64,000 bases of DNA from sequence record OV032902.1; one strand, 5' to 3'. The position numbers and the translations under genes are program-made. Shown here piece after piece: positions 30,373 through 63,638 of the stretch. Numbering within the stretch: position 1 is the first letter of the stretch; the number at the start of each line of letters is the position of its first letter. The notes below the pieces were generated by a model. The model saw only the letters and a list, made by a program, of their open reading frames with translations. It was not told the DNA's origin and ran no database searches.

Positions 30373-31031
30373 TCTCTAAACTAAAACGTGCCGATCGACA
30401 TGGTCGGCTTGAACTACCTTTGTGGTTTGTTGGTTGGACAGCGCTGTTTGCTGTCCTATTTACCATTGTACTGTTCGCTGTGGGCATTTACCACATCGAG
30501 GTGAACAAGGATGGGGCTAACATCCAAAGCTTCTCAGATGCGCTCTGGTTGGGCGTAATGACTGTGTCCACTGTTGGTTACGGTGACCGATTCGCTACTA
30601 GTGATGCTGGTCGTGTCCTAGTAACGGCGTTTATCTTCAGTGGACCTATCTTGCTAGGTTTGTTTATGACTATCGGTCAAGGTATCTTCCGTACCAATGC
30701 CAATGTCACAAACCGTGAACAGATGTCTGTGATGATGGAGCAGCTAAGATTGCTTAATGTTATTCAGGGTCACTTGAATATCGATGAGCCTATTACTGCC
30801 GATGCACATGGACTAGATGAGTTTATCTTCCAAACGAAATACAACTCTCTGAAGTATAAGGGTTGGATTACGTTAGGTAAAGATAATACTGGTACGTTTG
30901 TAATCGCTATCGTAGCCGACTCTAAGAAAGATGGCATCATGCCTCTTAAGCGTCACATCTACGCAACCGATGATTATGACTATGCATGGAATCTCATGCA
31001 GTTCTACATCAAAGACGAACGCGTGTTTTAA
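30369..31031 (+). CDS. Two-TM potassium channel (KcsA/Ion_trans_2-like)
   Basis: TM1, pore helix SFSDALWLGVMTVS, selectivity filter TVGYGD, TM2 (GRVLVTAFIFSGPILLGLFM). Confidence 0.9.
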   Translation: MISKLKRADRHGRLELPLWFVGWTALFAVLFTIVLFAVGIYHIEVNKDGANIQSFSDALWLGVMTVSTVGYGDRFATSDAGRVLVTAFIFSGPILLGLFMTIGQGIFRTNANVTNREQMSVMMEQLRLLNVIQGHLNIDEPITADAHGLDEFIFQTKYNSLKYKGWITLGKDNTGTFVIAIVADSKKDGIMPLKRHIYATDDYDYAWNLMQFYIKDERVF

Positions 31032-31090: not shown

Positions 31091-31657
31091 TTATAGGTTG
31101 TCGTGGATAACAAGACCATCATGGATAATCATGTCGTCGTAGAACTCAATAAGTTCACCGGCTTCAATCCAGTCACCATAAAAGAAAACACCTTCAGGAA
31201 TCTCAAGCGTTCTATCTCTCAATTCTTCCAGTTTATAAAGTGTAAGTGTCTTAAGCTCATCACCTGAGTTAATCAACATCCACTCGTCGCTTACCCAATC
31301 AACAGACACGCCAGGAGTCCGACGACAATACAGGTTTCCATTGCGGTATACAATGTCTTCCATTCGATAGAGTCGAAATGGCTTGAACGGATTAATATAA
31401 CCTTTCCGTACCTCGATAGGGTGAGCACTTTGTCTCGCTCCTTTCTTGTACCAGGCTTCTCGTTCACCGAGGTAGATAACGCCTCCGCCGCCCTCTGGTT
31501 CTGTCGTGTCAACGATGTTACCGTCTGAGGGGATAGACTCGTAGATTTTGGTCTTTTTGAATTTATCATAGAAGTGATGACTCGTTACGTAGATATTAAT
31601 CGGAGTAAACTCTTGGCCATTCATGACGTAGAGTTTGGTTACATACGCCTTTTCCAT
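31091..31657 (-). CDS. Cassette A gene 7: adaptor/anchor protein (~190 aa), putative virion protein
   Basis: AGTAGGTG RBS before ATG 31657; paralog of 38309..38953 and 48295..48915. Confidence 0.75.
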   Translation of the reverse strand: MEKAYVTKLYVMNGQEFTPINIYVTSHHFYDKFKKTKIYESIPSDGNIVDTTEPEGGGGVIYLGEREAWYKKGARQSAHPIEVRKGYINPFKPFRLYRMEDIVYRNGNLYCRRTPGVSVDWVSDEWMLINSGDELKTLTLYKLEELRDRTLEIPEGVFFYGDWIEAGELIEFYDDMIIHDGLVIHDNL

Positions 31658-31663
31658 GGACAC

Positions 31664-32143
31664 CTACTTAGGGATAGTTCCCAGTAATTCAAAATTAGCA
31701 ATAGCAAACGGAGTGTTAGCGGTAAGCATTACTTTGGTACGCAATAGCTTAATCTCATTCACACCGTCTGCGATAACTACGACACCGATAGGATATTCTT
31801 TTGCTGTGTTGTAAACACCATAAAAGAAACCCTCGTTTTCTTTCGTTGCCCAAAACAAACGCCAGTAGTTATGATCAAACAAAGGTTTGGTCTCACCCTG
31901 AGGAATATCTTTAACGCAACGGAAATAGCCAATTGACGAACGGATTTCATCACCAAAGACATAAGCCTTGCCTTCTTCCATAGACGCATAAGTATTCACG
32001 TCTGGATTGATAGGTGGCTGTTCATACGGGTCAGCATCTGCATTAGTAAATGACACGATGTCATTAATAGTGCGAACGATTTCTTGACCTGTACTATTCA
32101 ATGGGTCAGAAGCAGTAGGCTTAGAAACAATTGGATTCGTCAT
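31664..32143 (-). CDS. Cassette A gene 6: short paralog of the N-terminus of the 500-aa protein
   Basis: STGQEIVRTIN helix motif + GYFRCVKD..NYW.LFW; paralog of 38956..39450. Confidence 0.75.
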   Translation of the reverse strand: MTNPIVSKPTASDPLNSTGQEIVRTINDIVSFTNADADPYEQPPINPDVNTYASMEEGKAYVFGDEIRSSIGYFRCVKDIPQGETKPLFDHNYWRLFWATKENEGFFYGVYNTAKEYPIGVVVIADGVNEIKLLRTKVMLTANTPFAIANFELLGTIPK

Positions 32144-32760
32144 TCTATTTTACCTTCTAGCTCTACGCTGTAACAATACATGAAGCGACGCGAGGTACGC
32201 TTCGGACGGATAACAGACACTGCGGACTGTCTGTATAGCTTACTGTATGGAAGTTCTTTAACAACCGTAACAGCAGCTTGACGATATAGGCTCGCACTAT
32301 CTTTGATGCGGATTACAGAAGTTGCAGTCACGCGATACATGTGAGATGGGTCACGTTGTCGCACAACAGTTACAGCGGCTTGTCTGTATAACTTAGCAGC
32401 TCCCTTAATCTTAATTACCGACACTGCGGACTGTCGATATAGATTAGCGGGTTCTGGCATCTTCATAATGTAATCAACAGACATCGAAGTAAGGTTCGGG
32501 CCTGGATTCGGTTTCAGGATATAATCAATAGAAGCACCCGTCACATTAGGTCCCGGATTAGGAGCCATGATGTAATCAATAGATGCACCATATGTTTGCA
32601 CAGACTGTTGATCTGTATAAACTACTGATATTTCCTGTGCCTTGATATTAGGACCAGTGGCAGGCCCAAGAACTAACGAGAGCTCCTGAGCCTTAATGTT
32701 CGGACCATCTGAAGGACCTAAGACCAAAGACATCTCATGTGCATTGATCTTAGTACTCAT
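32140..32760 (-). CDS. Cassette A gene 5: 11-repeat beta-strand 'scaffold' protein
   Basis: ~17-aa repeats in three classes: 3x (K/N)I(N/K)A(H/Q)E.S.V, 3x (GA/SM)S.DYI, 5x LYRQ.AV.V. Confidence 0.75.
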   Translation of the reverse strand: MSTKINAHEMSLVLGPSDGPNIKAQELSLVLGPATGPNIKAQEISVVYTDQQSVQTYGASIDYIMAPNPGPNVTGASIDYILKPNPGPNLTSMSVDYIMKMPEPANLYRQSAVSVIKIKGAAKLYRQAAVTVVRQRDPSHMYRVTATSVIRIKDSASLYRQAAVTVVKELPYSKLYRQSAVSVIRPKRTSRRFMYCYSVELEGKIE

Positions 32761-34061
32761 TTCCAGGTCTCATACCAAAGCAGAACTTTCTGCGGTTGTG
32801 CTTTAATCTTATCAAAGAAAGCTTTCAAGCTAGAGCTTCCTGACGAACGCATATAGAAAGAACCACCTGACTGAGTGAATACATCACTATAAGTCATGCC
32901 GTCCTCTGTGCCCAGATAGACACGCATGTAAGTATGCACTGCACCATCTGGATCTTCTACAACGTTATTGCCAAGGTTCTTGATGTAACCCCCGCCAGTA
33001 GAGTTAATTTGAAACTCTTTCCAGCCAAAGCCACGCCAAGCACTATTGCCTGAAATCTTGTCAGCGTTATTATCGAAACCAACACCGGCACCAAAGTTAC
33101 CCATGTTAAACAAAGACGCATCAAAGTCAGCTTTTAAACCAAACGACAAACCAGCTACGTCACTAACACTCCATGGCTGTCCTGTCAATGGATTCGTCTC
33201 AGAAACCGTAAGGATAGGACCAGGGGTCAAATCAACGTGTGCGTATAGCGGCCACTTAAGTTCTTCTGTGTCAGTACCATCAGTAACGACAGGAGAGAGC
33301 CTAGGAGCGTCTGTATCAGCCGTTGCGGTAATAACATTAGACATTACAACGGCCTTAATGCTAAGGTCGCCTACAACGCCATTCAGAGGGTCTGTGTGTT
33401 TGAATGTCTGTATAGCAGGAACAGAAGTATTAAAACCTTCTTTAGTAACTGCCGTACCTTGAACGTTAGCTAAGTCACCATCCATCTCCGAGATATCGCC
33501 TAGAGCATCTGGAGCAGATGTAGCCAGACGGAAACCACGAGTGTCACTGTCAGCAACAATGATCTCACCAACATGACAACTGGTTGCACGGAACACACTG
33601 ATATGTGTAGTACCAAAACCAATAACGTTCTTTGCCCATGTAGTTACTTCATTGCCGTCCGCATAAATCGTGATGCCTTGTTCGTTAACATGGAAATCAA
33701 ACGTTCTCATCGAAGAGTTACTGAAAGTATGTGTCTCACGAACATAATTCAATGCATCGCAATACTCTACTTTCATTTTGGCATTACTTACCGAAACTTG
33801 GATGTAACCTTTCGAGCCACTTGAATCATTAAAGTAAAACTTAACGTAGCGAGAAGAAACACTACCGCCAGAAGCAATGGCATGAAGCCAGTATTCTTTC
33901 TCGCCATTCAAATCAATAGTTCGAGTAGAGCTATCGGGAATAGATGATACATCGCCAAAGGAAGCATGCGTACATGGAATCATCGTGGTGCGACCATCTG
34001 AACCATCAATGGCTGCATTGCCTCGAACAGTACTTGCATTAAGTACATTGATAATAGCCAT
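32757..34061 (-). CDS. Cassette A gene 4: ~434-aa putative adhesin/receptor-binding paralog
   Basis: GEIIVADSDTRGFRL...NPLTGQPW core shared by six paralogs. Confidence 0.65.
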   Translation of the reverse strand: MAIINVLNASTVRGNAAIDGSDGRTTMIPCTHASFGDVSSIPDSSTRTIDLNGEKEYWLHAIASGGSVSSRYVKFYFNDSSGSKGYIQVSVSNAKMKVEYCDALNYVRETHTFSNSSMRTFDFHVNEQGITIYADGNEVTTWAKNVIGFGTTHISVFRATSCHVGEIIVADSDTRGFRLATSAPDALGDISEMDGDLANVQGTAVTKEGFNTSVPAIQTFKHTDPLNGVVGDLSIKAVVMSNVITATADTDAPRLSPVVTDGTDTEELKWPLYAHVDLTPGPILTVSETNPLTGQPWSVSDVAGLSFGLKADFDASLFNMGNFGAGVGFDNNADKISGNSAWRGFGWKEFQINSTGGGYIKNLGNNVVEDPDGAVHTYMRVYLGTEDGMTYSDVFTQSGGSFYMRSSGSSSLKAFFDKIKAQPQKVLLWYETWK

Positions 34062-35347
34062 TATAAAGCCTCCACAAATAGACGAACTTTACCGCCAACG
34101 TTATTCTTAAAGATGTTATTGAAAGCAGCAACTTCCGTACCACGGTATCGTGAAACATCCCAAGAAAGAGTATTAGAAGCAACAGTTCCATCAGGTGCAA
34201 CTGCATGAATACGGATTTGATTGGCTCCGTCCCATTTGCCGTTATTCGCAGCACTAAAATAGAACATGTTGGTGTTGTACACCATTGCCAGTGTAATGGC
34301 AGACCCGCTAGGGAAAGTACCTTCAGCTGAACCATTGCCCGTATCCATTCCGTAATACAGGCCACTCTGGGCTACTGTTACAGATACGTCAGACGCTACG
34401 TTCTGGAAACCAAACTGCATTGACTCTGCATCAGCTTTAAGCCATTGTTCGCCAGTATGAGGATTGACGTTAAAGACCTTGGCTGAACCATTAGCGTACT
34501 GCTGTAATAGCTCGAAGGAACCAATGTCGTGATTTGTACCATCAGAAACAATTGGCTTCATGAACGGATTGGCTGCGTCTGCTTTAGCAAAGGAAGTATG
34601 ATTAAAAACCATAGCTTCTGGAACCATACCTGCCACTGAAGAATCAATGCCTTCAAAGGTAAATGTCTGTTGGCTATCAACACCGCCAGTAGACATAAAG
34701 TCATTCGTCAATCGATCAGTATTGATATCACTGACTTCACCAGCCCATTCAGACAATGCGCCTTTAGCTGCTACCTTACCTTCACTTAAACGCATGCCGC
34801 GAGTATCTTTAGTAGAGATAATGATCTCCCCGATACCTGTACTCGTAGCGCCCGTTTCCCACTCGTAGCTAAACGCAGCGATTTGAGTACCGGTATTGAT
34901 GTTCATAGCTAGATCTGGTTTAGCAGTACCGTCTACATAACCATAGACTCTGCCTGTCGTACCATCAATAAACAAATCGATGTCTTTATAGCCTGCGGAA
35001 CCTAGATGCCAGCTAGAGGAGCTTGAGCTAGGTGAGCTGAATGAACCGTGTCCCATCCAAAAGAATGGATACTTGCCGCCGCCCGTATTGTAAAACTCGA
35101 ACTTAACCTTTTCATCACTGTAGGCACGACTAAAGTGCCAGCGGAAATGAACCCAAAAGGAATTCGATGTTTCTGCAAAGTCATGACGGAATTGAGTAAT
35201 GCGCTCGCCCTTAGGAATACGACGAGTAAGAATATTACTGTCCGCAGCAATAGCTCCTTGGCGAGGGTCTACAGAAGAACCAGCCATATTGGAGTTATTG
35301 TTAAGAATACGCATACTGTCCAGATTACCAGTTGCTAGAATAGCCAT
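34061..35347 (-). CDS. Cassette A gene 3: ~428-aa putative adhesin paralog
   Basis: GEIIISTKDTRGMRL...NPHTGEQW core. Confidence 0.65.
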   Translation of the reverse strand: MAILATGNLDSMRILNNNSNMAGSSVDPRQGAIAADSNILTRRIPKGERITQFRHDFAETSNSFWVHFRWHFSRAYSDEKVKFEFYNTGGGKYPFFWMGHGSFSSPSSSSSSWHLGSAGYKDIDLFIDGTTGRVYGYVDGTAKPDLAMNINTGTQIAAFSYEWETGATSTGIGEIIISTKDTRGMRLSEGKVAAKGALSEWAGEVSDINTDRLTNDFMSTGGVDSQQTFTFEGIDSSVAGMVPEAMVFNHTSFAKADAANPFMKPIVSDGTNHDIGSFELLQQYANGSAKVFNVNPHTGEQWLKADAESMQFGFQNVASDVSVTVAQSGLYYGMDTGNGSAEGTFPSGSAITLAMVYNTNMFYFSAANNGKWDGANQIRIHAVAPDGTVASNTLSWDVSRYRGTEVAAFNNIFKNNVGGKVRLFVEAL

Positions 35348-35350
35348 GTC

Positions 35351-36706
35351 TTACTCCTCGAACGTAACAAAGATCGTAGAGTTATCTTTAAACAACTCAT
35401 CTAGTTTTGTACTAGTAACCGCATCGGTTTGATACCAACCACCTACTTGTTCAATGAACGTAACTGTTTCAGTTACACCATCAGCATTACTGAAAGTAGC
35501 ATCTAGGTTCGTCTTACCGCCCCACTGCTTAGTGCCATCGAACTCAAGAGAGATCTTCTTGGTAGAACCATCTCGGAAAAGGGTAAGCATTTCGGTTTGG
35601 TCGTCTGCGGTATGATGCATTGTCTGTGAACCATTGGCTTGGTCCACGCCGTAACGCCCACTAAAGCCTAGCATGGATACTACGTTTACTGTGAAGTTAG
35701 GACCTTTACTGATTTCCACACCTACCTGCATGCTGTTAAGGTCAGCCTTTGTCCAAGGTAAACCTGTGTGAGGGTTAGTCAACAGGATGTCTTGGTGCGT
35801 ACCTAGAGCAGAGTTCTCGTCAAGGTTAGTACCAGCGCCCACAGTATAGTGGTCATTAGAACCAAACATGATTGTATTCTTTAGATGCTTAGCAGCAGCT
35901 GTCGCTTGTGCGTCTGCCACAGAACCAACACCAACAGCAAGGATTTCATACTTGTCCATGTCGACGCCGCCTTTAACGTCACCGACAGCAAAGTTCTGTT
36001 TGCCTGGTCCATAGAACTTGAACGCGTCTTGAGTTAGCTCTTCGCCAAGGTCACTGTATGAACCTTCAGCTTCTTGTTTAACGCCTTCGTTTTCCATGAC
36101 GTGTTCGATAACGCGCATGCCGATAGTTTCTTCGTCTTCAGTCAGAACCATCTGCGTAATAGAGCCGTCACAGATAATACCGTGTGAAAGATTACGCCAG
36201 TCAAGTTGCTGCATCTTAGTTACAGTAGCTTCGCCTTGGAATTGTTCGTCTGCCCAGAATGCTACTTTACCTGTATTGTTATTCATACGAATATCAATAT
36301 TGTAAGCACCACCAGGACGAGTGAATGAAATCTGTGTCTGACCGGCAGAAGAACCATCCGGCATAAACTGAATGACCAGCTTAGTACTTGTTACTGAGAC
36401 CCAGATATTGAATGTACTTAATGCGATGTTTGATTTACCGATACGAATATCAGGATTACCGCCCGCAGAGGTCGCGCAGAAGTGCAGCCAAAGGATACCT
36501 TTCTCCGTGCTGAATTGGCGAAGTGGGAATTTACTGCGTTCGTAGTTGTCAATCAGATGCGACTGACGGTAGTAAGAAAACTTGTTATCGCCTGTGGATG
36601 CATCAAGAATCTTCAGGTTACGAGCACGAAGGTCGTAATCCGAGTTAAACTGGTAGCCGCTTTGTACTTCGTAATTGACGTCGTTTTGAATATATAGAAA
36701 TGACAT
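35351..36706 (-). CDS. Cassette A gene 2: 451-aa putative adhesin paralog
   Basis: MSFLYIQN; ETIGMRV...NPHTGLPW core. Confidence 0.65.
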   Translation of the reverse strand: MSFLYIQNDVNYEVQSGYQFNSDYDLRARNLKILDASTGDNKFSYYRQSHLIDNYERSKFPLRQFSTEKGILWLHFCATSAGGNPDIRIGKSNIALSTFNIWVSVTSTKLVIQFMPDGSSAGQTQISFTRPGGAYNIDIRMNNNTGKVAFWADEQFQGEATVTKMQQLDWRNLSHGIICDGSITQMVLTEDEETIGMRVIEHVMENEGVKQEAEGSYSDLGEELTQDAFKFYGPGKQNFAVGDVKGGVDMDKYEILAVGVGSVADAQATAAAKHLKNTIMFGSNDHYTVGAGTNLDENSALGTHQDILLTNPHTGLPWTKADLNSMQVGVEISKGPNFTVNVVSMLGFSGRYGVDQANGSQTMHHTADDQTEMLTLFRDGSTKKISLEFDGTKQWGGKTNLDATFSNADGVTETVTFIEQVGGWYQTDAVTSTKLDELFKDNSTIFVTFEE

Positions 36707-38208
36707 TATATAACCTTACATTCAAGGGTGAACGCGATGTCTGCTAATGTAGAGTCAGCAGACCCTTTAACTTGTAGTTTGATGAGATCGGTGGTCGAGA
36801 AATTGACCGTGGCAGGTACACTAAACGTGCCTTCTGTTTCGCCTGCATTCCAAGTAACCGTACCAACTTCTGTGTCGTTCTTAAGGATAGAAATAACACA
36901 TGTTCCTGTAGCAGCTGTTTGAGCAACAGCAGAAGATGCTAATGGAATCGTAGCAAGTTGGAACTTACGTACTGGATTGTCTACACATAAAAGCTCGTCA
37001 TCACGTAGTGTTTCAGACAAGAAAGCTTTTGTATAGTGTAACTCAGGTTTAGTGAAGGATAGTTTTTGTGTCCAATCATTCGCATCAAAGGCTTTTGGTA
37101 GAATCGTAGCTTTGGCTGTATAAACATACAGATTGATTCCGTCGGCTACAAGAACACTATCGTCTGCAACATAGGTGTTAGCAGCTGAAAAGTATCCCTT
37201 GAATTCTCCACCTTTGTGGATGGTCTCATGGTTGTCCCACTGAATGGGATCAAAAGGACCGGCAGCAATATTTAATTTTGCAGAGAGAACATCAATCTCA
37301 CCGTCATCATTAATGCGTGTTATCACGTCGTATTTGTTATATGATGCGGTAGCGTCAAATCGATTTCTGTATCGACCGCCAATGAGAAATGTTTCTTGCA
37401 AATTCCAGAGCGAAAGATTAAAAGCAGAAGAGTTGTCGATGTTAGTGCGAGCAACGTATAACTTGATGTTACCGTCAGCTTCTTCTTTGATTACGGTGTC
37501 ACCAGTAATGTAGTTAACACCTGCACCATATCGACCTTTGTAGGAAGGTAGTTGTACGTCTAGTCGTAAAGTCCACTCATTGACATCGAATGCTTTCGGC
37601 TCTATGTCCAATTTACATTCGTATACTTTCGTACCCAGTACCACAAGGTCATGCTCTTCGTAAGAAAGAGCTACGTTGTGATTACCGCGCCAATGCGAGT
37701 GTACGTCATTTACGGTAGCGTTGAGTTCTGTTAGAACTTCAAAGTTATTAGCGTCATACGGAACTGGGTCCGAGAACACTTTTGATTTAATTATCTTTAT
37801 GGTTTCCGACTCAACCTTAAGAAAGACTAAGTCAATGAACAAAGGTTTGCTTGCGTCATACATACCACCCCAGATTTCCCCCGAAATATCCGGAACATAA
37901 AACAAGTCCCAGTAATTACTGTCGGTGATAGGTATGTTGTTTCCCGCAGGCATTTCCTTTACACACTTAAAGAAACCGAACTTCAATCTCATCTCTGTAC
38001 CCAGAGGATACGCAAGATTAGGATTGTAGACAGTTTCTACTTGGACGCCAACTCCAGGAGCTGGTTCCGTCACATGGTCTTCTAAGATACCCGTGATATC
38101 AATCAACCCGTTGACAGTTTCGGCAAGATCTTTACCGTTACTGTTTTCTGGATGATCTTTCTCCGGGTGAGACACTAGCTTTTTAACGTTGTGTGATGTA
38201 GTTCTCAT
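36706..38208 (-). CDS. Cassette A gene 1: 500-aa fibre-like protein with Trp-capped ~55-aa repeats
   Basis: Start MRTTSH at 38208; repeated G.(F/Y)...Y...D.V....Y.A....F....W units; C-terminal beta domain ending ADSTLADIAFTL. Confidence 0.7.
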   Translation of the reverse strand: MRTTSHNVKKLVSHPEKDHPENSNGKDLAETVNGLIDITGILEDHVTEPAPGVGVQVETVYNPNLAYPLGTEMRLKFGFFKCVKEMPAGNNIPITDSNYWDLFYVPDISGEIWGGMYDASKPLFIDLVFLKVESETIKIIKSKVFSDPVPYDANNFEVLTELNATVNDVHSHWRGNHNVALSYEEHDLVVLGTKVYECKLDIEPKAFDVNEWTLRLDVQLPSYKGRYGAGVNYITGDTVIKEEADGNIKLYVARTNIDNSSAFNLSLWNLQETFLIGGRYRNRFDATASYNKYDVITRINDDGEIDVLSAKLNIAAGPFDPIQWDNHETIHKGGEFKGYFSAANTYVADDSVLVADGINLYVYTAKATILPKAFDANDWTQKLSFTKPELHYTKAFLSETLRDDELLCVDNPVRKFQLATIPLASSAVAQTAATGTCVISILKNDTEVGTVTWNAGETEGTFSVPATVNFSTTDLIKLQVKGSADSTLADIAFTLECKVI

Positions 38209-38239
38209 GGATAAAATTTCCATTCTAATTAAAAGAAAC

Positions 38240-38257
38240 GGTCTTCGGGTGACCATA
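38240..38257 (-). promoter_or_regulatory. Putative late promoter (TATG) with +1 hairpin, cassette A
   Basis: Minus strand TTAATTA-TATG, then G(+1)GTC-ACCCGAA-GACC. Confidence 0.55.
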
Positions 38258-38258
38258 T

Positions 38259-38301
38259 AATTAAACCGAAAAAATAAACCTCCTGACCCGAAGGCCAGGA
38301 G
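38259..38301 (-). terminator. Intrinsic terminator ending cassette B
   Basis: Minus strand CTCCTGGCC-TTCG-GGTCAGGAG followed by GTTTATTTTTT. Confidence 0.85.
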
Positions 38302-38308
38302 AATTTAG

Positions 38309-38953
38309 TTAGTCTTCATCAGGACTTGTACTACCATCATCTCGGAAAAGACGCAAGTTATCATGGAGTATCATCTCATCCCAAAAGGATGTGGTATCCG
38401 TGATAATCTCAGGCTTCTCTTCTTCGACGGTATCTGGATCGAACGGTTCTTCTGCGTACTCCAATCGGTCGCCGTAAAAGAACACGCCGTATTTCATTTC
38501 GAAAGGTTCTGTTTCAAAGTCAATAGAATCGTAAACAGTCAATGCTGGTATCTGGTGGCCAGACTCTACTTCTACCCATTCTTCAGGACGCCAAATTCCT
38601 TTACCTGCATCTAAGCGAGAAAAGATTTTGCCGCCATAAGAGATAACGTCAAACTTGTCGTAATGCTCTTCTGGATTAAAGTAAGAGATGAAACCTTGGT
38701 GTACTGTGATAGGAAGAAGCTTACGGTTATTCTTACCGGTGTAAAAAGCCTTGTCTTCTTCCAACAGGATAACGCCCGTATCCTTTTCGTCAATAACACT
38801 ATCGACAAGATACTGGACGTCACCATTGATTTCATATACTGCATCCTTTACAAAGCGTTCGTAAAACGTACGACTTGTAAGGTAAACGTTCAGTGGAACT
38901 TCTAGACTTTGGTCAATCGTGAATAGTCGAACGATAAAACTTCTGTCTAGCAT
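38309..38953 (-). CDS. Cassette B gene 7: adaptor/anchor protein, 214 aa
   Basis: Paralog of 31091..31657 (F.V.L..., GF(I)..F.P...Y...D.I.Y.G...W). Confidence 0.75.
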   Translation of the reverse strand: MLDRSFIVRLFTIDQSLEVPLNVYLTSRTFYERFVKDAVYEINGDVQYLVDSVIDEKDTGVILLEEDKAFYTGKNNRKLLPITVHQGFISYFNPEEHYDKFDVISYGGKIFSRLDAGKGIWRPEEWVEVESGHQIPALTVYDSIDFETEPFEMKYGVFFYGDRLEYAEEPFDPDTVEEEKPEIITDTTSFWDEMILHDNLRLFRDDGSTSPDED

Positions 38954-38955
38954 AA

Positions 38956-39450
38956 TTACACCTTAGGAATACGTTGTGTGATTTTGAATTTCGAAATATC
39001 GAAAGCGGTATTAGCAGGGATGAGAACTTGTGATACAAGCACTAGAATCTCAGAGCCCTGTTCGTACAGCACAGTAACACCAGCAGGATACTCTAGTGTG
39101 TTGGTGTACATACCGCCGAATGCCGTAAGATCTTGGGCTGGCATCCAGAATAGCTTCCAATAGTTTCGATCTGTAATATCTACAGTCTGACTTGCAGAGA
39201 TGTCCTGAACACAACGAAAGTAGCCTTGTGCGCTGCGTAGTTCATCGCCTACTGCATAAGCCTTAGACTGATCGTAATAATCGTAAGTGTTCACGTTAGG
39301 ATTTACCTCTGGTTCAGCATTGATAGATTCAGCGCCTGTACGCTCTACAAGGAAGTTAGCCGTGTTAATGATAGTTTGGTACAGATCATTAGCAGGGTCT
39401 TCCTTAGTAGACATAGAGACGATTTTACGTAAGGGACGTTCAGTGTTCAT
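38956..39450 (-). CDS. Cassette B gene 6: short paralog of the N-terminus of the 499-aa protein
   Basis: VNPNVNTY...GDELRSAQGYFRCVQDI...NYWKLFW. Confidence 0.75.
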   Translation of the reverse strand: MNTERPLRKIVSMSTKEDPANDLYQTIINTANFLVERTGAESINAEPEVNPNVNTYDYYDQSKAYAVGDELRSAQGYFRCVQDISASQTVDITDRNYWKLFWMPAQDLTAFGGMYTNTLEYPAGVTVLYEQGSEILVLVSQVLIPANTAFDISKFKITQRIPKV

Positions 39451-39459
39451 ACATTCTCC

Positions 39460-40083
39460 TTACTTCAAATCTACAACGTATGAGTTTACGAAACGGCGTC
39501 GCTTAGGTCCCGCAGGAACAACGACAACCGATACTGTTTGCTTGTGTACTTTACCGTACCAGTAAATAGGTGCGACAACAGTAGAAGCTGTTTGCTTATG
39601 TAGACGTGCCTCCGGTGGTGGAGGAGCAATAACAATCGAAATCGTTTGTTTGTGTAGCTTCGCCTTCAAGTTACTTGGAGCAACAACTACCGATACAGTT
39701 TGTTTATGTACGTCTGCCAATGGAGCAGGGAACATAACTACATCAATATAAGCTGACTTAACATTAGGTCCTGGCTGTGGAGCTAGAACAACATCCTGAT
39801 AAGCTGACTTGACAAAAGGACCTAGTTCGGGCTGAAGGACTACGTCTTGATAAGCTGACTTTATATTTGGGCCTGAAATGGGAGCGAAGACAACGTCTTT
39901 ATACAAGCTCTTCGTCGTAACCAGATTTTGTGTGCGCATTACAACAGAAATCTGCTGGTGAGAGACACGAGGACCTGGGTCCGGTTTCATAACAACAGAA
40001 ATCTGCTGATGTGCTACCTTTGGACCCGGTTCTGGTTTTAATACAAGAGAGACCTGTTGATGGCGTACATCAGTTGTACTCAT
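39460..40083 (-). CDS. Cassette B gene 5: 11-repeat beta-strand 'scaffold' protein
   Basis: 3x HQQ(V/I)S.V, 4x KS(A/L)Y.DVV, 4x HKQT.S.V; C-terminal RRF..Y.V.L as in cassette A. Confidence 0.75.
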   Translation of the reverse strand: MSTTDVRHQQVSLVLKPEPGPKVAHQQISVVMKPDPGPRVSHQQISVVMRTQNLVTTKSLYKDVVFAPISGPNIKSAYQDVVLQPELGPFVKSAYQDVVLAPQPGPNVKSAYIDVVMFPAPLADVHKQTVSVVVAPSNLKAKLHKQTISIVIAPPPPEARLHKQTASTVVAPIYWYGKVHKQTVSVVVVPAGPKRRRFVNSYVVDLK

Positions 40084-40093
40084 GGTCTACTCC

Positions 40094-41416
40094 TTATGAG
40101 ATTGGACGGATAATCGCCTTAACGGTTGTATTCTCGGCAGCCACAAAATCATCACGGCAGCCGTCAGGGACTACGCCTTCGTATCTGGTAGAGCCATCAT
40201 ACTCTAGAGTAAATTCATACCCTTTTCCGTTAACAAGTACCGACACTAAAATCTTAGACTCGCCAGTGCTGATGAGTCCATTGCTACCGCCAGTGAACGA
40301 AATATTGAATTCGGAAGGACTTCCTGACTTAGAAAAGAAACGATTAATAGTTTCTCCTGTCATTGCCTTGGTTGTAGAACCAAAGATGACCGTAGTGGCC
40401 ATTCCGTATTCGTTGGATGCTGACTTACCGACTGTGATTTCAAAATCCGACTCTAATGCCTGAACACCGAATTGCATGTTATCGAAATCGGTGTTTGTCC
40501 ATACTTGTCCCGTAAGCGGATTAGTATGCATGATAGTTGTCAAAGAACCAGCGTGACTGTCCGGCCCCTGTCCGATAGGAGTTGCGCACTCTTTAGGCGA
40601 GCCGCTGTCATTAACTATATTAGCCAAGAACGGAGCTGTAGACGATGACGTCGCAGACGCTACCGTGCCAATGATAACAGCCTCTGGAACAAGACCTGCG
40701 GCCTTAGCAGAAGTAGGAATATTCTCATAGTCATACGTTTGTGAGCTGGCACCAGTTGCAGATGCGAATGTAATCGGGTCTAGCTGATCGCCAGAAATAT
40801 CCGCATAGCTGCCACTAAAGCCAGTCAGTGCACCATCACTTTCTGCGTCTACTGTTAGCAGGCGCATTCCTCGTGTATCCGAATCAGAAACAATAATCTC
40901 TGTCATTCGATTACCATTTAATGCACGAGCAGCAAAACCATGTAAGGTATTTACAGGATGCGATGTACCCATCCAACCGGCAGTGTCTTCTCCATCGATT
41001 ACACCGTCACGGTAAATTCTAACGGTATTGCCGGTAATCTGAATGTCCCAGTCATGCGGGTCATTTGAACCAACGGCACCCGCTGTAGGAGTAATCGTGG
41101 AAACCAGTGACGCTCCCTGATAAACCTTGAATAGTCCATCAGAGCCATCAATCAAAACGGCAGCAATGTCTGCATTATTGGTACTCTTGAAACGGGCAGC
41201 TACATCTCGACTGCCTGCTCGAAAGTGAATCCAGATAGAACCCGTAGTGGTTTCCTCAAATGGTGCGAAATCAGCAAAGTTGTTATCAATCGACCAAGAT
41301 TGAAAATCGCCGGAGTTAGATGTCGCCGAGGTACTCGTACGTTGGTTACCAGCCTGCAAAGAGTTAGCTAGAGGAACATGCATCGTTGCGATGTTTATTA
41401 CGTGTAAAATAGCCAT
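40094..41416 (-). CDS. Cassette B gene 4: 440-aa putative adhesin paralog
   Basis: TEIIVSDSDTRGMRL...NPLTGQVW core. Confidence 0.65.
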   Translation of the reverse strand: MAILHVINIATMHVPLANSLQAGNQRTSTSATSNSGDFQSWSIDNNFADFAPFEETTTGSIWIHFRAGSRDVAARFKSTNNADIAAVLIDGSDGLFKVYQGASLVSTITPTAGAVGSNDPHDWDIQITGNTVRIYRDGVIDGEDTAGWMGTSHPVNTLHGFAARALNGNRMTEIIVSDSDTRGMRLLTVDAESDGALTGFSGSYADISGDQLDPITFASATGASSQTYDYENIPTSAKAAGLVPEAVIIGTVASATSSSTAPFLANIVNDSGSPKECATPIGQGPDSHAGSLTTIMHTNPLTGQVWTNTDFDNMQFGVQALESDFEITVGKSASNEYGMATTVIFGSTTKAMTGETINRFFSKSGSPSEFNISFTGGSNGLISTGESKILVSVLVNGKGYEFTLEYDGSTRYEGVVPDGCRDDFVAAENTTVKAIIRPIS

Positions 41417-41427
41417 GGTCTAACTCC

Positions 41428-42759
41428 TTATGCATTACCGATGATCGTGAAGTATAACTTCTTACCTACGTCTTTCTCAATAGATTCAGAAATACGAAGC
41501 GCGAGGTCACTGCCGAAAAGTCGGAAGTAGTTACCAGTTTCATGAGGAATCTCTAAAATTCCACCTGGTCCGTCTTCTACCGCAATTTTAAGCGTCACCG
41601 AACTAAAGCCGTTGTCGCCACCACCGTCAAACTCTAGGAACATGTCGCCATTCTGTTTAAATGCTAACGCATAGAGCGCAGCATGAGCGCCACCATGTGT
41701 CATGTCACCAGAAATAATAGTAGAGTTAAGTTTACCGTAGCCGAATTGAACTGGGCTACCGCCAAGGTTATCGGTGTCCGTTACAACAGTCATTGCAACA
41801 TTGCGAATACGCAGACTAGATGTATCGATCAGAGCAGATGACCATTGACCACCAGTAAGAGGAGCCACAGCATCAATGTTCTGGTTTAGGTTTGCATCCG
41901 TTTCTGTCGACAGTACACGGTAACCGATAAGATGCTCATCTGTACCGTCAAACAGAGAGTACTCCAAGACAGGAGAGTCAGGTGTACCTACGATGTCTGC
42001 AACAGAACCCACGTTAACTCCAACAACCTTCATGCCAGAAAGCTGAACGTTAGAGAAGTTAAGGTCAAGTACTGAGCCAGCAGCAGGAGATGACATAGCA
42101 GCTTCAGTAAGCGATGTAGTTTGAATATCAGAAAGAGAACCACTGAAATCATTCTGTGCGCCGATAGAAGCGGGCTTGGTGGATTGAACGCGCCAGCCGC
42201 GAGTATCTGTATCCGAGAAACAGATTTCAGACAAATAGGCACTGGAACTTGCCAGATTAAACGTCATGTATGATAACTGACGAGATCCCATATAGCCGTT
42301 CGAACCACCAAAGGCACGTGCGCCGTTTATATAAACGTCAAACTTGTTTTCCGCTCCATTCCAATGAATATCGACGTCATTGAAATCGTTCTGACTCATA
42401 CTAGGACTCAGACCACCGGTTGAAGGAGTAGACGATGAATTGTTTGCACCAAAAGCATTAGCAGACAGTTTAAAGTTAGTGTAACCAGCATCAGAGCCGC
42501 CTGCCTCATAATGGACCTTCATGGTAAGGTTACCAGAACTAGGTCTTAGACGGAAATGCATCCAAAGATTTTCAGTGGACAATGTAACCGGTAGACGGAA
42601 GAAGGTATCCGAATCTGTCCATTGGCTAAATGCCCAGTCAGTAACAGTATCCAGGGCAGTAGCGTCAACAACGCCAGCGGTACGCTCATCTTCTGACGTG
42701 TATTCTTTACCTGACTGAACAGAAGCGTTGCCTGGGTTGAGAGTATGAATAATAGTCAT
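41428..42759 (-). CDS. Cassette B gene 3: 443-aa putative adhesin paralog
   Basis: SEICFSDTDTRGWRV...APLTGGQW core. Confidence 0.65.
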   Translation of the reverse strand: MTIIHTLNPGNASVQSGKEYTSEDERTAGVVDATALDTVTDWAFSQWTDSDTFFRLPVTLSTENLWMHFRLRPSSGNLTMKVHYEAGGSDAGYTNFKLSANAFGANNSSSTPSTGGLSPSMSQNDFNDVDIHWNGAENKFDVYINGARAFGGSNGYMGSRQLSYMTFNLASSSAYLSEICFSDTDTRGWRVQSTKPASIGAQNDFSGSLSDIQTTSLTEAAMSSPAAGSVLDLNFSNVQLSGMKVVGVNVGSVADIVGTPDSPVLEYSLFDGTDEHLIGYRVLSTETDANLNQNIDAVAPLTGGQWSSALIDTSSLRIRNVAMTVVTDTDNLGGSPVQFGYGKLNSTIISGDMTHGGAHAALYALAFKQNGDMFLEFDGGGDNGFSSVTLKIAVEDGPGGILEIPHETGNYFRLFGSDLALRISESIEKDVGKKLYFTIIGNA

Positions 42760-42769
42760 TTTCTTATCC

Positions 42770-44125
42770 TTATACTGTTACGTAAATCTTAACTAGTTTA
42801 CCTAGCTGGCCTTGCAGCCAAGTAGTAATCGCAGGGTCTGTTACACTGTAATCGATTGTAGCGAACGTCACGGTAGCCGATGCTTCCGTACCGTCTTCAC
42901 TCACAAGACGAACAGTAACAGTATTGGCATTATCGAACTTAGTATCGGTATCGAAGCGAATAGTGAAAACGTTACTTGCAGTAATGGCATTACAGCGAAT
43001 CAAAGCATTACCCGCAGTCTTGTCGGTTGAGATAGAAGTAAACTCACCAGCAAAGCCATCAGCATAGCCAAAGTAAGTTCCGCTATCTGCAACAATCATT
43101 CGACCAACCGGCGGAGCACTGTAAGAGAAACCAGCTTCTAGAGCATTGATTTCAGCAATTGTCCATGCTGCACCAGTAGCAGGGTTTATTTCCATGATGT
43201 CTTTCTGATGCAAAGCATCTGAAGCCGTATCAATGATTGAACCTTTGCCTTTGTATTCAGTACCACCTATCTTGATAACGTTCTCACCGAAGTTATCTTC
43301 AAATAGTTCATCTGCCGAGGCAATAGTGTTGATAGACACGGCACGTACTTCCATGTCAGTCAGGTCTACACCTGCTTTAATGTCTTCGTACGTAAATGTT
43401 TGACTACCAGCGGCGTCAGTAGACATACCTGCCTCAGTTAGCGTGATTGATTGAACATCACTTAGGTTGCCTGTAAGGTCAGTACTTGTACCTAGTGCTT
43501 CTGGTGGAAGTTCGATGAGACGCATACCTAGAGTAGGGATACCCTGTGTAATGATTACTTCGGCAGCACCTGAGCTTACATTAGACGAGTCATTATACCA
43601 CCATTTAAAATCGGAAGCATCCAGAGTCGCTATGCTAGAGTTAGTGCCTTCGCCTACTTTATTTTCGTTAACAAAAGCAGCCCATGCACCAGAAGTAATA
43701 TTGATCTTCACGTCTATGGAACAACGCTGGTTAGTAGGGATAACCGTTTCGCCATAGATTTCAACCGAAGAACCTTTTTCGACATAGATGCCTAGGTTAC
43801 TGGAAGAAGTACCAAAGATCATAAAGTGCGCGCGATTAGAACCTTTTCTTTCGCCTTCAGGGAAGAAGTCGATTTGACAAGCACTAAAGCCTTCGTTCAT
43901 ACGGAAATGAAACCACAGATCATCTGTTTCGTTTTCGAAATCTTCCAGAACACGATAGTTGTAATGCATGTTGTGATCTATGCCGCGCTGATAGTCTGGG
44001 TGACGGTGGCCGTTAGACGTAGACGTCGTTGTACGTTTATCTGTGTTAGTAAAAACGTCATTAGGACCTAAGTCTTTACGGAAGTTAGAGTCACACTCGT
44101 TTTGGATGTATAGGAATTTTGCCAT
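42770..44125 (-). CDS. Cassette B gene 2: 451-aa putative adhesin paralog
   Basis: MAKFLYIQN; PTLGMRL...NPATGAAW core. Confidence 0.65.
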   Translation of the reverse strand: MAKFLYIQNECDSNFRKDLGPNDVFTNTDKRTTTSTSNGHRHPDYQRGIDHNMHYNYRVLEDFENETDDLWFHFRMNEGFSACQIDFFPEGERKGSNRAHFMIFGTSSSNLGIYVEKGSSVEIYGETVIPTNQRCSIDVKINITSGAWAAFVNENKVGEGTNSSIATLDASDFKWWYNDSSNVSSGAAEVIITQGIPTLGMRLIELPPEALGTSTDLTGNLSDVQSITLTEAGMSTDAAGSQTFTYEDIKAGVDLTDMEVRAVSINTIASADELFEDNFGENVIKIGGTEYKGKGSIIDTASDALHQKDIMEINPATGAAWTIAEINALEAGFSYSAPPVGRMIVADSGTYFGYADGFAGEFTSISTDKTAGNALIRCNAITASNVFTIRFDTDTKFDNANTVTVRLVSEDGTEASATVTFATIDYSVTDPAITTWLQGQLGKLVKIYVTV

Positions 44126-44135
44126 GATAAAAACC

Positions 44136-45635
44136 TTATATTACCTGACCTTCGATGGTTACAGAAATGTTAGCAAGAGTAGTATCAGCTGTACCATCTT
44201 GAGTTAACACTAAAGTATCACCGGTAGTGAATGTAGAGTCCGCAGCGAATACAACTGTAGCTGTTGTTGCTCCGGCAGCAAAGTTCAAACGTCCTACCGC
44301 AGTAGAACCATTAGAGATGATTAAAGATGTAGCATTCGTAGAGGCTACTTGAGCTACTGCACTAATACCTGCGCCACCAGCAGCAATTGTAAAGTCACGA
44401 ACAGGAACCTCAATAAAGAGTACCTCGTCGTCTGCGATGGTGTCCATGATAACGGCTTTGGTTACATGAAGAGCAGGCTTAACAAACGTTTGATTAGAAT
44501 CCCACTTGCTTAGATCAATAGGTCCAGCAGGGATTGTTTCTTTAGCGGTCAGTACTTGTAGGTTACCTGAGCCGTCATCATAGAGGACAACGTCACCTTC
44601 GCCATAAGTATTAGCGGCACTAAAGTCACCTCGGAATTCACCACCTTTAAGGATGGTAGTTTTAACCGTCCACTCACCAGCTTGGAATGGACCAGCAGTA
44701 ATTAAAGCATTCGCTTCCAGGATGTCGATTTCACCGTCAGCGTTTTCATTGGTAACGATATCAAACGGGTCATAGTTAGTCACCGTTGAGAAGGCACCTT
44801 TAAACTTACCGCCTACTTTGAAGATAGCCTTTAGCGACCACTGAGCTGAATTGAAAGCACCAGTAGGAACATCTGCGTCTGCTTCATATAGGTTATGATA
44901 ACCCACCAAGTCAACGTAAATGACCAAGTCACCTTTCTTATATGCAACGGCCGTATCGAACGTACCTTTATAAGTAGGCTGGTAGACAGTAGTAAGGATT
45001 GTCCATGCCGCTGGATTGAATGTACCCGCTAACTGACTTGTGTTAGCTTGATAAACGATGTTCTCAATGTAAACGATATCTTCTTCATCATAATCAGAAG
45101 TTTCGCTGAACATACCTTTCCATGCAGCTGAACCACCTGTCGACATAACTTCATGCAAAACAGTAAAGTTGTTTTCGTCGTAAGGTGTATCTGCGTCGAT
45201 TGGACCAATAGCCTTAATAATAAGAATACGGTCTGGCTCAACTTTGTATAGTACCTCACCTTGAACAATGGCTTGAGTCTCGTCAAACTCTCCGCCGAAT
45301 ACATCACCTACTGACGAAGGTAGGTAAAATAAGTCCCAGTGATTTTTATCAGTCAAAGGGATATTGTTGTTGGCTGGCATATCTTCCGTACAGCGAAAGA
45401 AACCAAAAGGAGTTCTGATTTCTGAACCTACTAAATACGGGAAGTTCGGATTGTAGACTGTGTCGACTACGACAGCAGGGGGTGCATCAGGAACCAGACT
45501 TGGGTCTAGTTCGGCACCAGTAATATCAATCAGCCCGTTAAGTACCTCAGCCAGATCTTTACCGTTCGGGTTACGAGGGTCGTATCTGTCTGGATAAGTA
45601 ATGAGCTTCTTTATCTCATGAGAGGTTGTACGCAT
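44136..45635 (-). CDS. Cassette B gene 1: 499-aa fibre-like protein with Trp-capped repeats
   Basis: GGAG RBS before MRTTSHEIKK at 45635; colinear paralog of 36706..38208. Confidence 0.7.
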   Translation of the reverse strand: MRTTSHEIKKLITYPDRYDPRNPNGKDLAEVLNGLIDITGAELDPSLVPDAPPAVVVDTVYNPNFPYLVGSEIRTPFGFFRCTEDMPANNNIPLTDKNHWDLFYLPSSVGDVFGGEFDETQAIVQGEVLYKVEPDRILIIKAIGPIDADTPYDENNFTVLHEVMSTGGSAAWKGMFSETSDYDEEDIVYIENIVYQANTSQLAGTFNPAAWTILTTVYQPTYKGTFDTAVAYKKGDLVIYVDLVGYHNLYEADADVPTGAFNSAQWSLKAIFKVGGKFKGAFSTVTNYDPFDIVTNENADGEIDILEANALITAGPFQAGEWTVKTTILKGGEFRGDFSAANTYGEGDVVLYDDGSGNLQVLTAKETIPAGPIDLSKWDSNQTFVKPALHVTKAVIMDTIADDEVLFIEVPVRDFTIAAGGAGISAVAQVASTNATSLIISNGSTAVGRLNFAAGATTATVVFAADSTFTTGDTLVLTQDGTADTTLANISVTIEGQVI

Positions 45636-48298: not shown

Positions 48299-48915
48299 TT
48301 GTGAATCTCCAACTGATTGTGAATTTCAAGATCACGATGTAGCTCGCCCAATGTAGAGCCAGCTTGGTAAAGTGATTCGATATTTGGGTCTGTGTCCTTA
48401 GGACGTCTCATTCGATTCTTGGTCCTTGTAGGACGACCCAACTCGATGATCATAGAATCACCAAGTACAGTAGATTCTGCACCACCTGTATCAGAGTAGT
48501 ACGTAACATCGGTAAGGGTATATTCAGGACGCACAAGAACCCACTCTTTGCGCTTGAACGGACCTTTACCAGGAGCACGACGAATGTAGACATTACCACC
48601 AACAATGGCTAAGTCTTCATCTGCGTAGTACTTTTCAGGGTCGAAGGGAGCTACATAAGCCGTACCTGATTCTAAAGGTAGTAGAGTACCCTCAGTAACA
48701 GCACGATAAAACTTTCCTTCTTTACTTAGCAATGAACCCAGAAAACGACGAACGTAAGTTTCGCTTTCTGTAATCGCTACTTGGGTTTCAACATTAGTGC
48801 TGAAGTCCGCAACCAAGCGACCATGAAGATCTTTACTAACGATATAGTAATTGGTATTCTCGATAGTTCCATCTGTCTTGAATAACGCCAACCTTAAAAT
48901 AAGTTCATTTTTCAT
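48295..48915 (-). CDS. Adaptor/anchor protein, 206 aa (third paralog)
   Basis: Same AGTAGGTGTC leader as 31657; PFDPEKYY.DED...GG.VY.RR.PG.G.F...EW.LV motif. Confidence 0.75.
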   Translation of the reverse strand: MKNELILRLALFKTDGTIENTNYYIVSKDLHGRLVADFSTNVETQVAITESETYVRRFLGSLLSKEGKFYRAVTEGTLLPLESGTAYVAPFDPEKYYADEDLAIVGGNVYIRRAPGKGPFKRKEWVLVRPEYTLTDVTYYSDTGGAESTVLGDSMIIELGRPTRTKNRMRRPKDTDPNIESLYQAGSTLGELHRDLEIHNQLEIHK

Positions 48916-63052: not shown

Positions 63053-63638
63053 TGCTATTGCTGCAATCTTCGTTGTTATGCTCTTAGCGATCTTCGGATT
63101 GCTTTGGGCATGGCGCTGTTCCCGCAAAGAGTATTGGGACGAAGAGAAAGAGACTAACCGTTATCGAGCAATGCTAGATCAAGCGGAATGTCTAAATAAA
63201 GATAGAGAGTGGATGACTACGCTCTTCTTTACTATCGAGACTTACTACTATATCCTTCCTCGTATTTGGAAAGCGTATAAAATGGGCGTGCAGTCTCGTG
63301 ACGAAGTCTGCATAAAACAAACGATAGCTCTCCTTAAGTCCTATCGTGAATTTTACTCGACGGTTAAGAGTAATCCAGGATGGTATATTAAAGTCAACGC
63401 CACGAACAGCGTCCCTATGTTTATCAAACCAGGTGGACTGCTTATGGCTAAGACTATGTACTACAAATATGTTCACTTGAGTATCCATCAAAACGGCATG
63501 ATTAAAATGACGGTTCCAGTGGGTGAAAGCGTACAGTCTTGTTTGCTCCGTGATTTCTTAATTGAACCAGAGGTAGAAATCGGCCCTTCGTTCTGTCAGC
63601 AATTATCGGTGAGTCATGAACCTCGAAAACTTCCTTAG
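63033..63638 (+). CDS. Membrane-anchored hypothetical protein
   Basis: GGAG RBS before ATG 63033; TM AAIFVVMLLAIFGLLWAW. Confidence 0.7.
   Translation: METLHSNAIAAIFVVMLLAIFGLLWAWRCSRKEYWDEEKETNRYRAMLDQAECLNKDREWMTTLFFTIETYYYILPRIWKAYKMGVQSRDEVCIKQTIALLKSYREFYSTVKSNPGWYIKVNATNSVPMFIKPGGLLMAKTMYYKYVHLSIHQNGMIKMTVPVGESVQSCLLRDFLIEPEVEIGPSFCQQLSVSHEPRKLP

Follow-up and report, generated by a model that had tools for sequence, protein, structure and literature searches.

Colinear cassettes of a jumbo Vibrio phage encode proteins built of blocks of 17-residue strand units, candidate adaptors for lectin-like tail proteins

The cassettes and their repeat proteins

Here we describe two gene cassettes of the 320-kb jumbo Vibrio phage vB_VpaM_sm033 (OV032902.1), and the repeat protein that each of them encodes. 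The stretch analysed, referred to as the window, comprises bases 1-64000 of that genome. All genes of the region are annotated as hypothetical, and literature searches on sm033 and on pir03, a second phage with such a cassette, returned nothing concerning them. The cassettes lie in tandem on the minus strand, B running from 45635 down to 38309 and A from 38208 down to 31091, and each has seven genes in the same order: a fibre-like protein, three LamG/galectin-like paralogs, the repeat protein, an N-domain (anchor-domain) protein of 159 or 164 residues, and a protein of 188 or 214 residues. The products measure 499; 451, 443 and 440; 207; 164; and 214 residues in B, and 500; 451, 428 and 434; 206; 159; and 188 residues in A. 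Identity between proteins in matching positions is 43% for the fibre-like proteins, 28-29% for the paralogs, 32% for the repeat proteins, 44% for the N-domain proteins and 30% for the last pair. Judged by gene order and these identities, A and B are colinear duplicates of seven genes each, a relationship that the original prediction for this DNA had overlooked.

Repeat protein A (206 residues; 32140..32760, minus strand) consists of 11 units of 17 residues in blocks of three, three and five, and repeat protein B (207 residues; 39460..40083, minus strand) of 11 units in blocks of three, four and four; in both, a basic patch and a terminal strand follow. Self-similarity is greatest at a lag of 17 residues, with harmonics at 34 and 51 (mean BLOSUM62 score 1.68 for A and 1.10 for B), and in 300 shuffles the best lag never rose above -0.10, so that the 17-residue period is far beyond chance. 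A single-unit hidden Markov model (HMM) run with hmmsearch gave fragmentary matches, and units were therefore called by a position matrix with dynamic-programming segmentation, which independently placed 11 units in each protein. Pairwise comparison of the units gives identity matrices of block-diagonal form (3/3/5 in A, 3/4/4 in B): over 15 residues, identity within blocks is mostly 40-80%, falling to 27-33% for the most degenerate units; between blocks, values span 0-27% in A and reach 40% in B. The blocks of A are marked by A.E.S.V (three units), S.DYI (three) and YR(Q/V)..(V/T).V (five), and those of B by HQQ.S.V (three), KS(A/L)Y.DVV (four) and HKQT.S.V (four). A PxPGP (or xGP) turn is missing from the last unit of the first two blocks in both proteins, and both C-termini carry RRF...Y.V.L, a degenerate extra strand beyond the basic patch. 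The period test, the segmentation and the matrices thus agree with what had originally been read from these two open reading frames (ORFs), namely units of ~17 residues, 11 per protein, in three blocks with the motifs quoted. When A is aligned with B, A lacks one unit in its block 2 and B lacks one in its block 3; the three-block layout is shared because the cassettes were duplicated, and the totals are equal because of these +1/-1 unit indels. Searches of Pfam, PHROGs, NCBIfam and PDB sequences gave nothing usable for either protein.

Class identity resides in the polar strand positions 1-6 of the unit, and the core positions are universal. Across 60 units, positions 7-9 are hydrophobic in 88-100% and Pro11 is present in 68% of them; polar residues predominate at positions 1-6, apart from a frequently hydrophobic position 5, and Gln3 is a conserved polar residue in many units. 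Positions 1-6 are nearly invariant within a class, at 0.16-0.82 bits, compared with 2.0-2.8 bits between classes. This likeness is not matched at the DNA level. In units of the same class, identical residues use the same codon 32-53% of the time versus 38-41% expected from the genes' own codon usage, nucleotide identity is 50-61%, and Tandem Repeats Finder detected no 51-base-pair (bp) DNA repeat. The small repeat proteins of the T5-like phage VCPH, when compared with the blocks of its large one, have likewise kept residues and not codons, and a fresh duplication was seen only in one locus (L008), where two units agree at 48 of 48 bases. Since residues are shared and codons are not, the blocks must be old, and it is selection on the protein that has maintained class identity; the codon test and Tandem Repeats Finder both rule out that the blocks arose by recent duplication or gene conversion.

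An AlphaFold2 monomer model of the 207-residue protein has 12 strands, one for each unit and one for the tail, in a self-contained stack or solenoid, at low confidence (predicted local distance difference test, pLDDT, 57, from a two-sequence alignment). The best Foldseek matches of this model in the PDB are all solenoids, with E values of 0.2-6, none of them significant. Like curli CsgA, FapC and left-handed beta-helices, the repeat proteins have tandem strand-turn units, a fixed polar residue (Gln3 in many units) and, in the model, one strand per unit. They have no curlin or hexapeptide sequence signature, and, to our knowledge, known solenoids keep one consensus throughout and have no discrete blocks.

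Directly upstream of each repeat gene lie exactly three paralogs of 428-451 residues, as had been noted at the outset (~430-450 residues). Those of cassette B occupy 42770..44125 (paralog 1, 451 residues), 41428..42759 (paralog 2, 443 residues) and 40094..41416 (paralog 3, 440 residues), and those of cassette A occupy 35351..36706 (paralog 1, 451 residues, closest to the first paralog of B), 34061..35347 (paralog 2, 428 residues) and 32757..34061 (paralog 3, 434 residues), all on the minus strand. Their mutual identity is 20-30%, and each of the six matches the functionally uncharacterised family phrog_6368 over ~330 residues with E values of 1e-13 to 4e-24 (A1, 5e-15; A2, 1e-13; A3, 5e-19; B3, 2e-23). 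They also match a family HMM, which recovers 15 long and 8 core-only members in 10 loci. The AlphaFold2 model of the 440-residue paralog (pLDDT 59) is best at residues 60-177, which form a jelly roll, and its first 57 residues are of low confidence. In the PDB, Foldseek matched this model to galectin carbohydrate-recognition domains (E 3e-6, probability 1.0, target TM-score 0.6), and in BFVD to the pir03 paralogs, to ~320-residue proteins of many phages, one of them named a virion structural protein, and to LamG/ConA-like phage proteins. Lectin-like subdomains of clostridial neurotoxin binding regions also appear in the Foldseek list, as a generic jelly-roll resemblance. Given a galectin/LamG-like jelly roll and a place in tail modules, the label of adhesin that the paralogs had been given is plausible.

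Relatives of the repeat proteins

The repeat family is very rare and unannotated. Among phages in GenBank it is carried only by sm033, pir03, C-ZP2022 and VCPH. Apart from proteins of the window itself, word-based homologue searches found only one short contig and a single protein of C-ZP2022, and scans of IMG/VR, JGI metagenomes and GTDB genomes with alignments of the repeat, the N domain and the paralogs found almost nothing; the sole productive scan, of IMG/VR with the core-only family alignment, gave three new loci. A profile search of 1.84 billion representative proteins returned eight matches, three of them real. The remainder (P0002, P0004, P0006, P0008 and P0009) were discarded on inspection as unrelated, eukaryote-like tandem repeats of similar period. 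Four of these (P0002, P0006, P0008 and P0009) are long proteins with near-perfect repeats of ~17 residues that reach E values down to 4e-55 against the repeat profile without kinship, and false matches of this kind are a warning for profile searches that use short-period repeats.

The arrays differ widely in size and setting. In pir03 and C-ZP2022, six paralogs accompany 14 units in five classes (2/4/3/3/2) at the C-terminus of a 626-residue protein; one or two extra degenerate units are possible upstream in pir03. The N-terminal 370 residues of the pir03 protein were considered as a seventh paralog, and this was ruled out, as they have no similarity to the paralogs. VCPH has three paralogs and three repeat proteins, of 3, 18 and 3 units, the large one arranged as 1/6/4/7 and the small ones with a single class each. 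A single core-only paralog is found in L008, with a 64-residue protein of three units of one class; in L014, with a ~64-residue protein (68-codon ORF), again of three units of one class; and in L009, with a 520-residue protein of ~28 units, 22 of them of one degenerate class and without blocks. L010 has four distant paralogs and eight N-terminal units (2/2/2/2) on a 566-residue protein, and L016 one paralog and six N-terminal units of one class on a 693-residue protein. The four L010 proteins were linked to the paralog family by hhalign (probability 83.5%, E 8e-6), and the core protein of L016 matches them with E values of 1e-16 to 1e-24, a second link to the family. Units, a basic patch with strand cap and a LamG-like neighbour occur together in both window proteins, in pir03, in the three VCPH proteins, in L008 and in L014; L009, L010 and L016 have the units and the context in common with them, and not the C-terminal cap. 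The basic patch and last strand are common to the stand-alone members from Vibrio phages and looser in two short proteins of uncultured phages. In L016, a 331-residue protein (6394-7386), encoded between the LamG-like protein and the 693-residue protein, starts with a single unit-like stretch (..KNFAYGVVLTPPAP..).

Despite this variety, the position of the repeat gene is constant across jumbo, T5-like and uncultured phages. In all ten arrays found, the gene directly upstream encodes a paralog homologue (in L016 it is the second gene upstream), which argues that the repeat protein is functionally tied to the paralogs. A further neighbour is a protein that ends in the X domain found at the C-terminus of the fibre-like proteins. 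In VCPH the arrays lie in three triplets, each made up of a protein ending in X, a paralog and a repeat protein, and the paralog cores of L008 and L014 each follow an X-domain protein; the X-domain protein of L014 carries a collagen triple-helix region and is therefore probably trimeric. The smallest modules pair a lectin-like protein of ~340 residues with a three-unit partner of 64-72 residues, and all four stand-alone mini-proteins of this size have exactly three units. The pair of an X-domain-ending protein and a LamG-like core is conserved in N4-like, T5-like, jumbo and uncultured phages (including L003, L005, L006, L008 and L014). An exchange of host-recognition modules has been reported for Alteromonas phages (PMC10579305), and it is paralleled by the spread of the present module over uncultured phages, jumbo myoviruses, N4-like podoviruses and a T5-like siphovirus.

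The number of unit classes largely tracks the number of paralogs, as had been anticipated, in a sample of about eight lineages, some of them related, and with class calling that is partly subjective. Loci with one paralog have arrays of one class (L008, L014, L016, L009 and the two small VCPH proteins) and genomes with several paralogs have arrays of several classes, the ratios of paralogs to classes being 3:3, 3:3, about 4:4 and 6:5; VCPH has three paralogs and three main classes. In addition, the classes seen in the two 3-unit proteins of VCPH recur in its 18-unit protein as blocks 1 and 2, with cross scores of 40.6 and 32.2 between small protein and block compared with 34.7-45.1 within those classes. 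These comparisons support a specific association of individual blocks with their cognate lectin-like proteins. Class orthology across phages, as co-phylogeny with paralog types, was not demonstrable, and only the blocks of A and B are weakly colinear. A total of 11 units, which had been thought conserved, is not: the totals are 3, 3, 3, 3, 6, 8, 11, 11, 14, 18 and ~28, and block sizes run from 2 to 22.

Other genes of the cassettes and their surroundings

The fibre-like proteins head the cassettes on the minus strand, at 44136..45635 in B (499 residues) and 36706..38208 in A (500 residues). From domain HMMs and PHROG matches, each comprises an N domain of ~160 residues, CBM5/12-like repeats and a C-terminal X domain of ~110 residues that matches PHROG tail-fibre families. 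The CBM5/12-like units, chitin- or carbohydrate-binding modules of which there are about four in tandem (four in B), match Pfam CBM_5_12 with an E value of 8e-5, below the curated cut-off, and are of interest in a phage of chitin-associated vibrios. The X-domain profile has a weak match (E 0.02) in the long tail fibre of phage 7-7-1 (PDB 9rkv_M), namely to the jelly-roll tip at its C-terminus; the N-terminus of that fibre is anchored in the baseplate.

The 159-residue protein of cassette A (31664..32143, minus strand), whose start overlaps the stop of the repeat gene, and its 164-residue counterpart in B (38956..39450, minus strand) match the N-domain HMM, and the former is ~30% identical to residues 1-160 of both fibre-like proteins; by these matches the two proteins correspond to the N domain of the fibre-like protein alone. 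The N-domain HMM also matches the internal CBM5/12-like units, and the 159- and 164-residue proteins therefore probably include one such unit. The last genes, for proteins of 188 residues in A (31091..31657, minus strand) and 214 residues in B (38309..38953, minus strand), belong to a family without known relatives, and the 188-residue protein has no Pfam or PHROG match. It is also related to a 206-residue protein at 48295-48915 and to a 214-residue protein of pir03, so that members of this family end each cassette, precede the 854-residue gene upstream and occur once in pir03. The pir03 cassette further encodes a 331-residue fibre-like protein and a 161-residue N-domain protein. The genes for the 206-residue and 854-residue proteins form an upstream unit (45734..48915, minus strand) that may belong to the same apparatus as the cassettes.

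Strong terminator-like hairpins flank both cassettes on the minus strand. The one upstream of cassette B, past the 854-residue gene (45727-45702), has an 11-bp stem with eight GC pairs followed by a T run, and the one between the cassettes (38302-38279) a 10-bp stem followed by a T run; the third (31062-31039), directly past the stop of the 188-residue gene, is bidirectional, has a 10-bp stem with seven GC pairs and closes cassette A. Stops overlap starts at several genes, for example between paralog 3 and the repeat gene and between the repeat gene and the 159-residue gene of cassette A. We propose that each cassette is a terminator-bounded operon.

Adjoining the cassettes on the opposite strand is the gene for a 220-residue potassium-channel-like protein (30369-31031, plus strand; Pfam Ion_trans_2, E 2e-12; PHROG 'Kef-type K+ transporter'). 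On their other side, a gene at 49036-49980 (plus strand) encodes a protein with HAD_SAK_2, the HAD domain of 'Swiss Army Knife' RNA repair proteins (E 6e-9). The pir03 cassette is flanked by a protein with the same Pfam domain (L011, 1-734), and the locus may therefore be syntenic between both jumbo phages. An annotated gene for NAD-dependent DNA ligase (ligA) begins at the edge of the window (63616-64000, plus strand).

Possible roles of the repeat proteins

We suggest that the cassette is an accessory receptor-binding module of the tail, in which the repeat protein would act as a strand-repeat adaptor or hub with blocks specific for individual lectin-like paralogs. We hold this explanation tentatively, as one that comes close to being probable without reaching it, and favour it because arrays are fused to large or tail-gene proteins in three lineages and because selection has acted on the polar strand positions. 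In this view 17-residue units, each made of one beta-strand and a Pro-rich return, would stack into a rod that is probably solenoid-like. The core common to all units would come from Pro11 and the hydrophobic positions 7-9, and the class-specific polar positions 1-6 would let each block display a distinct surface for one cognate LamG/galectin-like protein. The basic patch and last strand may attach the array to other parts of the module, for which the tip of the X-domain fibre and the anchor-domain protein encoded next are candidate contacts. Arrays with several blocks would thereby let one fibre position bear several different lectin-like proteins. We infer the fold, the physical binding, the assignment of partners to blocks and the presence in the virion.

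Related solutions are known from other phages. In the branched complexes of phages CBA120 and G7C and of Klebsiella jumbo phages, receptor-binding proteins share one attachment point through adaptor modules. As in the present cassettes, several receptor-binding proteins are encoded in a row in these phages (TSP1-4 of CBA120, gp63.1/gp66 of G7C and the hyperbranched fibres of the Klebsiella jumbo phages), and their number varies between relatives. Their adaptor, however, consists of folded N-terminal domains of the tailspikes, while the candidate here is a separate protein of 17-residue strand units in blocks, and profile, PDB-sequence and Foldseek searches found no sequence or fold match between the two. 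If the repeat protein is a hub, it would follow the logic of cellulosome scaffoldin with its cohesin-dockerin specificity types, in that a single polypeptide with differently specific docking modules in a row brings different lectin-like or enzymatic subunits together. A cohesin, however, is a folded domain of ~150 residues, whereas a docking block here would be 2-7 strands of 17 residues, and there is no homology.

Several observations weigh against an adaptor with partner-specific blocks. In pir03, six paralogs face five clear classes, and L010 can be read as having four classes or fewer. The 18-unit, three-class protein of VCPH adjoins a single paralog, and in L009 there are 22 units of one class beside one paralog, a number without obvious meaning. 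The paralog core also occurs without a repeat protein, together with an X-domain protein in N4-like Vibrio phages (L005, which is 1.224.A, and L006, which is 1.188.A) and alone in RcXuper, RpAliso and L015. The association of counts could be a historical trace of duplicated pairs of paralog and mini-repeat gene, with the small genes fused later. Lastly, the sole structure model is the low-confidence one described above, with no significant fold match.

A further form of this explanation is that blocks constitute a compact docking code, in which a run of at least two (typically three) identical 17-residue strands binds one, probably trimeric, lectin-like tail protein, the blocks being kept separate, fused into hubs or grafted onto tail proteins. 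The recurrence of three units in the minimal modules, taken with the probably trimeric X-domain fibre, would suggest one block per trimer. We regard such a code as possible, with more doubt than confidence.

A plain fibre shaft is an explanation that we consider rather unlikely. Fibrous phage and viral shafts typically have units of 15-20 residues with alternating hydrophobics and a Pro/Gly turn, much like the period of 17 and the Pro11 found here, and triple beta-spiral shafts of the adenovirus-fibre type share these properties. The array would then be a homotrimeric beta rod of triple beta-spiral or triple beta-helix type that provides length, with blocks as structural subdomains and with the paralogs attached elsewhere, for example at the X-domain tip. 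The N-terminal arrays on large tail-gene proteins in L010 and L016 are placed as a shaft might be, and the constant total of 11 in A and B in spite of +1/-1 indels could mean a constraint on length. The layers of a homotrimer are symmetric whatever their neighbour, however, so that a shaft gives no reason for consecutive units to stay alike over saturated synonymous sites, and the triple beta-spiral does not account for the block organisation. A stand-alone protein of three units would measure just ~1.5 nm, and both the association of class and paralog counts and the classes shared within VCPH are left unexplained. Nor did Foldseek return any solved fibre shaft among its PDB matches (all E > 0.2, from a low-confidence query model), and no structural match to the triple beta-spiral was seen.

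Alternatively, each block or mini-protein could be a cognate folding or trimerisation helper of the preceding adhesin, outside the virion or transiently bound, which in our view is improbable. The gene arrangement is what would be expected of such a chaperone: fibre chaperones and tip adhesins are classically encoded right after their partner, the stop of one gene overlapping the start of the next, and in T4 gp37/gp38, in the Tfa systems of Mu and lambda and in the V22/A5 modules of Alteromonas phages a small gene directly follows its partner, as it does in all loci of the present family. The size of the mini-proteins (64-72 residues) and cognate class specificity would suit a chaperone as well. 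Pairs of fibre and chaperone are specific and travel together between unrelated phage families (PMC10579305); they have no homology to the repeat proteins, and the V22/A5 chaperones resemble intramolecular chaperone domains and not strand repeats (PMC10579305). Searches of Pfam, PHROG, NCBIfam and PDB sequences gave no match to known chaperone families, several phages have a working paralog core and no gene of this kind, and arrays of 18-28 units would be hard to account for. Unlike fibre chaperones, the arrays can be multi-block and are at times fused covalently to large, probably structural domains, C-terminal to 370 residues in pir03 and N-terminal on the proteins of 566 and 693 residues among tail genes in L010 and L016. 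Such fusions, seen in three lineages, are easier to reconcile with a structural component than with a free chaperone.

Solenoid proteins bind periodic ligands through flat arrays of identical polar side chains, and the repeat protein could accordingly bind a periodic host-surface polymer itself, such as O-antigen, capsule or chitin, with blocks of different specificities. Class identity does lie in the polar positions, and the neighbouring fibre-like protein has CBM5/12-like repeats. There is no similarity to any carbohydrate-binding family, and direct binding would leave unexplained both the link between class and paralog numbers and the classes common to the small and large VCPH proteins. 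We therefore judge it quite improbable.

The mechanism first put forward for this locus, donor-strand complementation in which each unit inserts into the incomplete fold of one paralog copy and the unit numbers (3:3:5 and 3:4:4) set order and stoichiometry, is very improbable: class specificity backs it indirectly and the low-confidence first 57 residues of the paralog model might fold only in a complex, but no chaperone-usher components or pilin-like folds were found, the jelly-roll model has no obvious missing strand at its level of confidence, blocks of 2 to 22 units serve a single type of partner, and totals of 3 to ~28 units are not conserved. Neither a PapD-like periplasmic chaperone nor an outer-membrane usher was found, the sole Pfam match of the 14 cassette proteins being the weak one to CBM_5_12. 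Chaperone-usher subunits have an incomplete Ig-like fold, short of its final strand, whereas the paralog model is a galectin/LamG-like jelly roll (medium to low confidence). Unit-like strands are as a rule absent from the paralogs, only 1 of 15 scoring above shuffles. The last strand of the 440-residue paralog (..TTVKAIIRP.., 40094-40130), directly before the repeat gene, has a unit score of 12.1 against a 95% shuffle level of 8.7 and may be chance or a remnant. The original prediction had set strand insertion against a repeat protein that folds on its own as a solenoid, and the sole model, though of low confidence, folds on itself in just this way, with one strand per unit. The range of block sizes also means that repeat number does not look like a code for stoichiometry.

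If the repeat protein is indeed an adaptor, blocks of 17-residue strands would be a much smaller solution to a problem of mounting than those described so far, since the attachment of several receptor-binding proteins to one tail position is known to us for a few tailspike systems only, via folded adaptor domains. With this analysis phrog_6368 acquires a first functional context, as does the conserved marine-phage pair of a fibre ending in the X domain and a LamG-like protein. Should the blocks prove to be a docking code, phages could rewire a multivalent receptor-binding array by shuffling modules of 50 bp, a scaffolding principle that would be undescribed for any virus.

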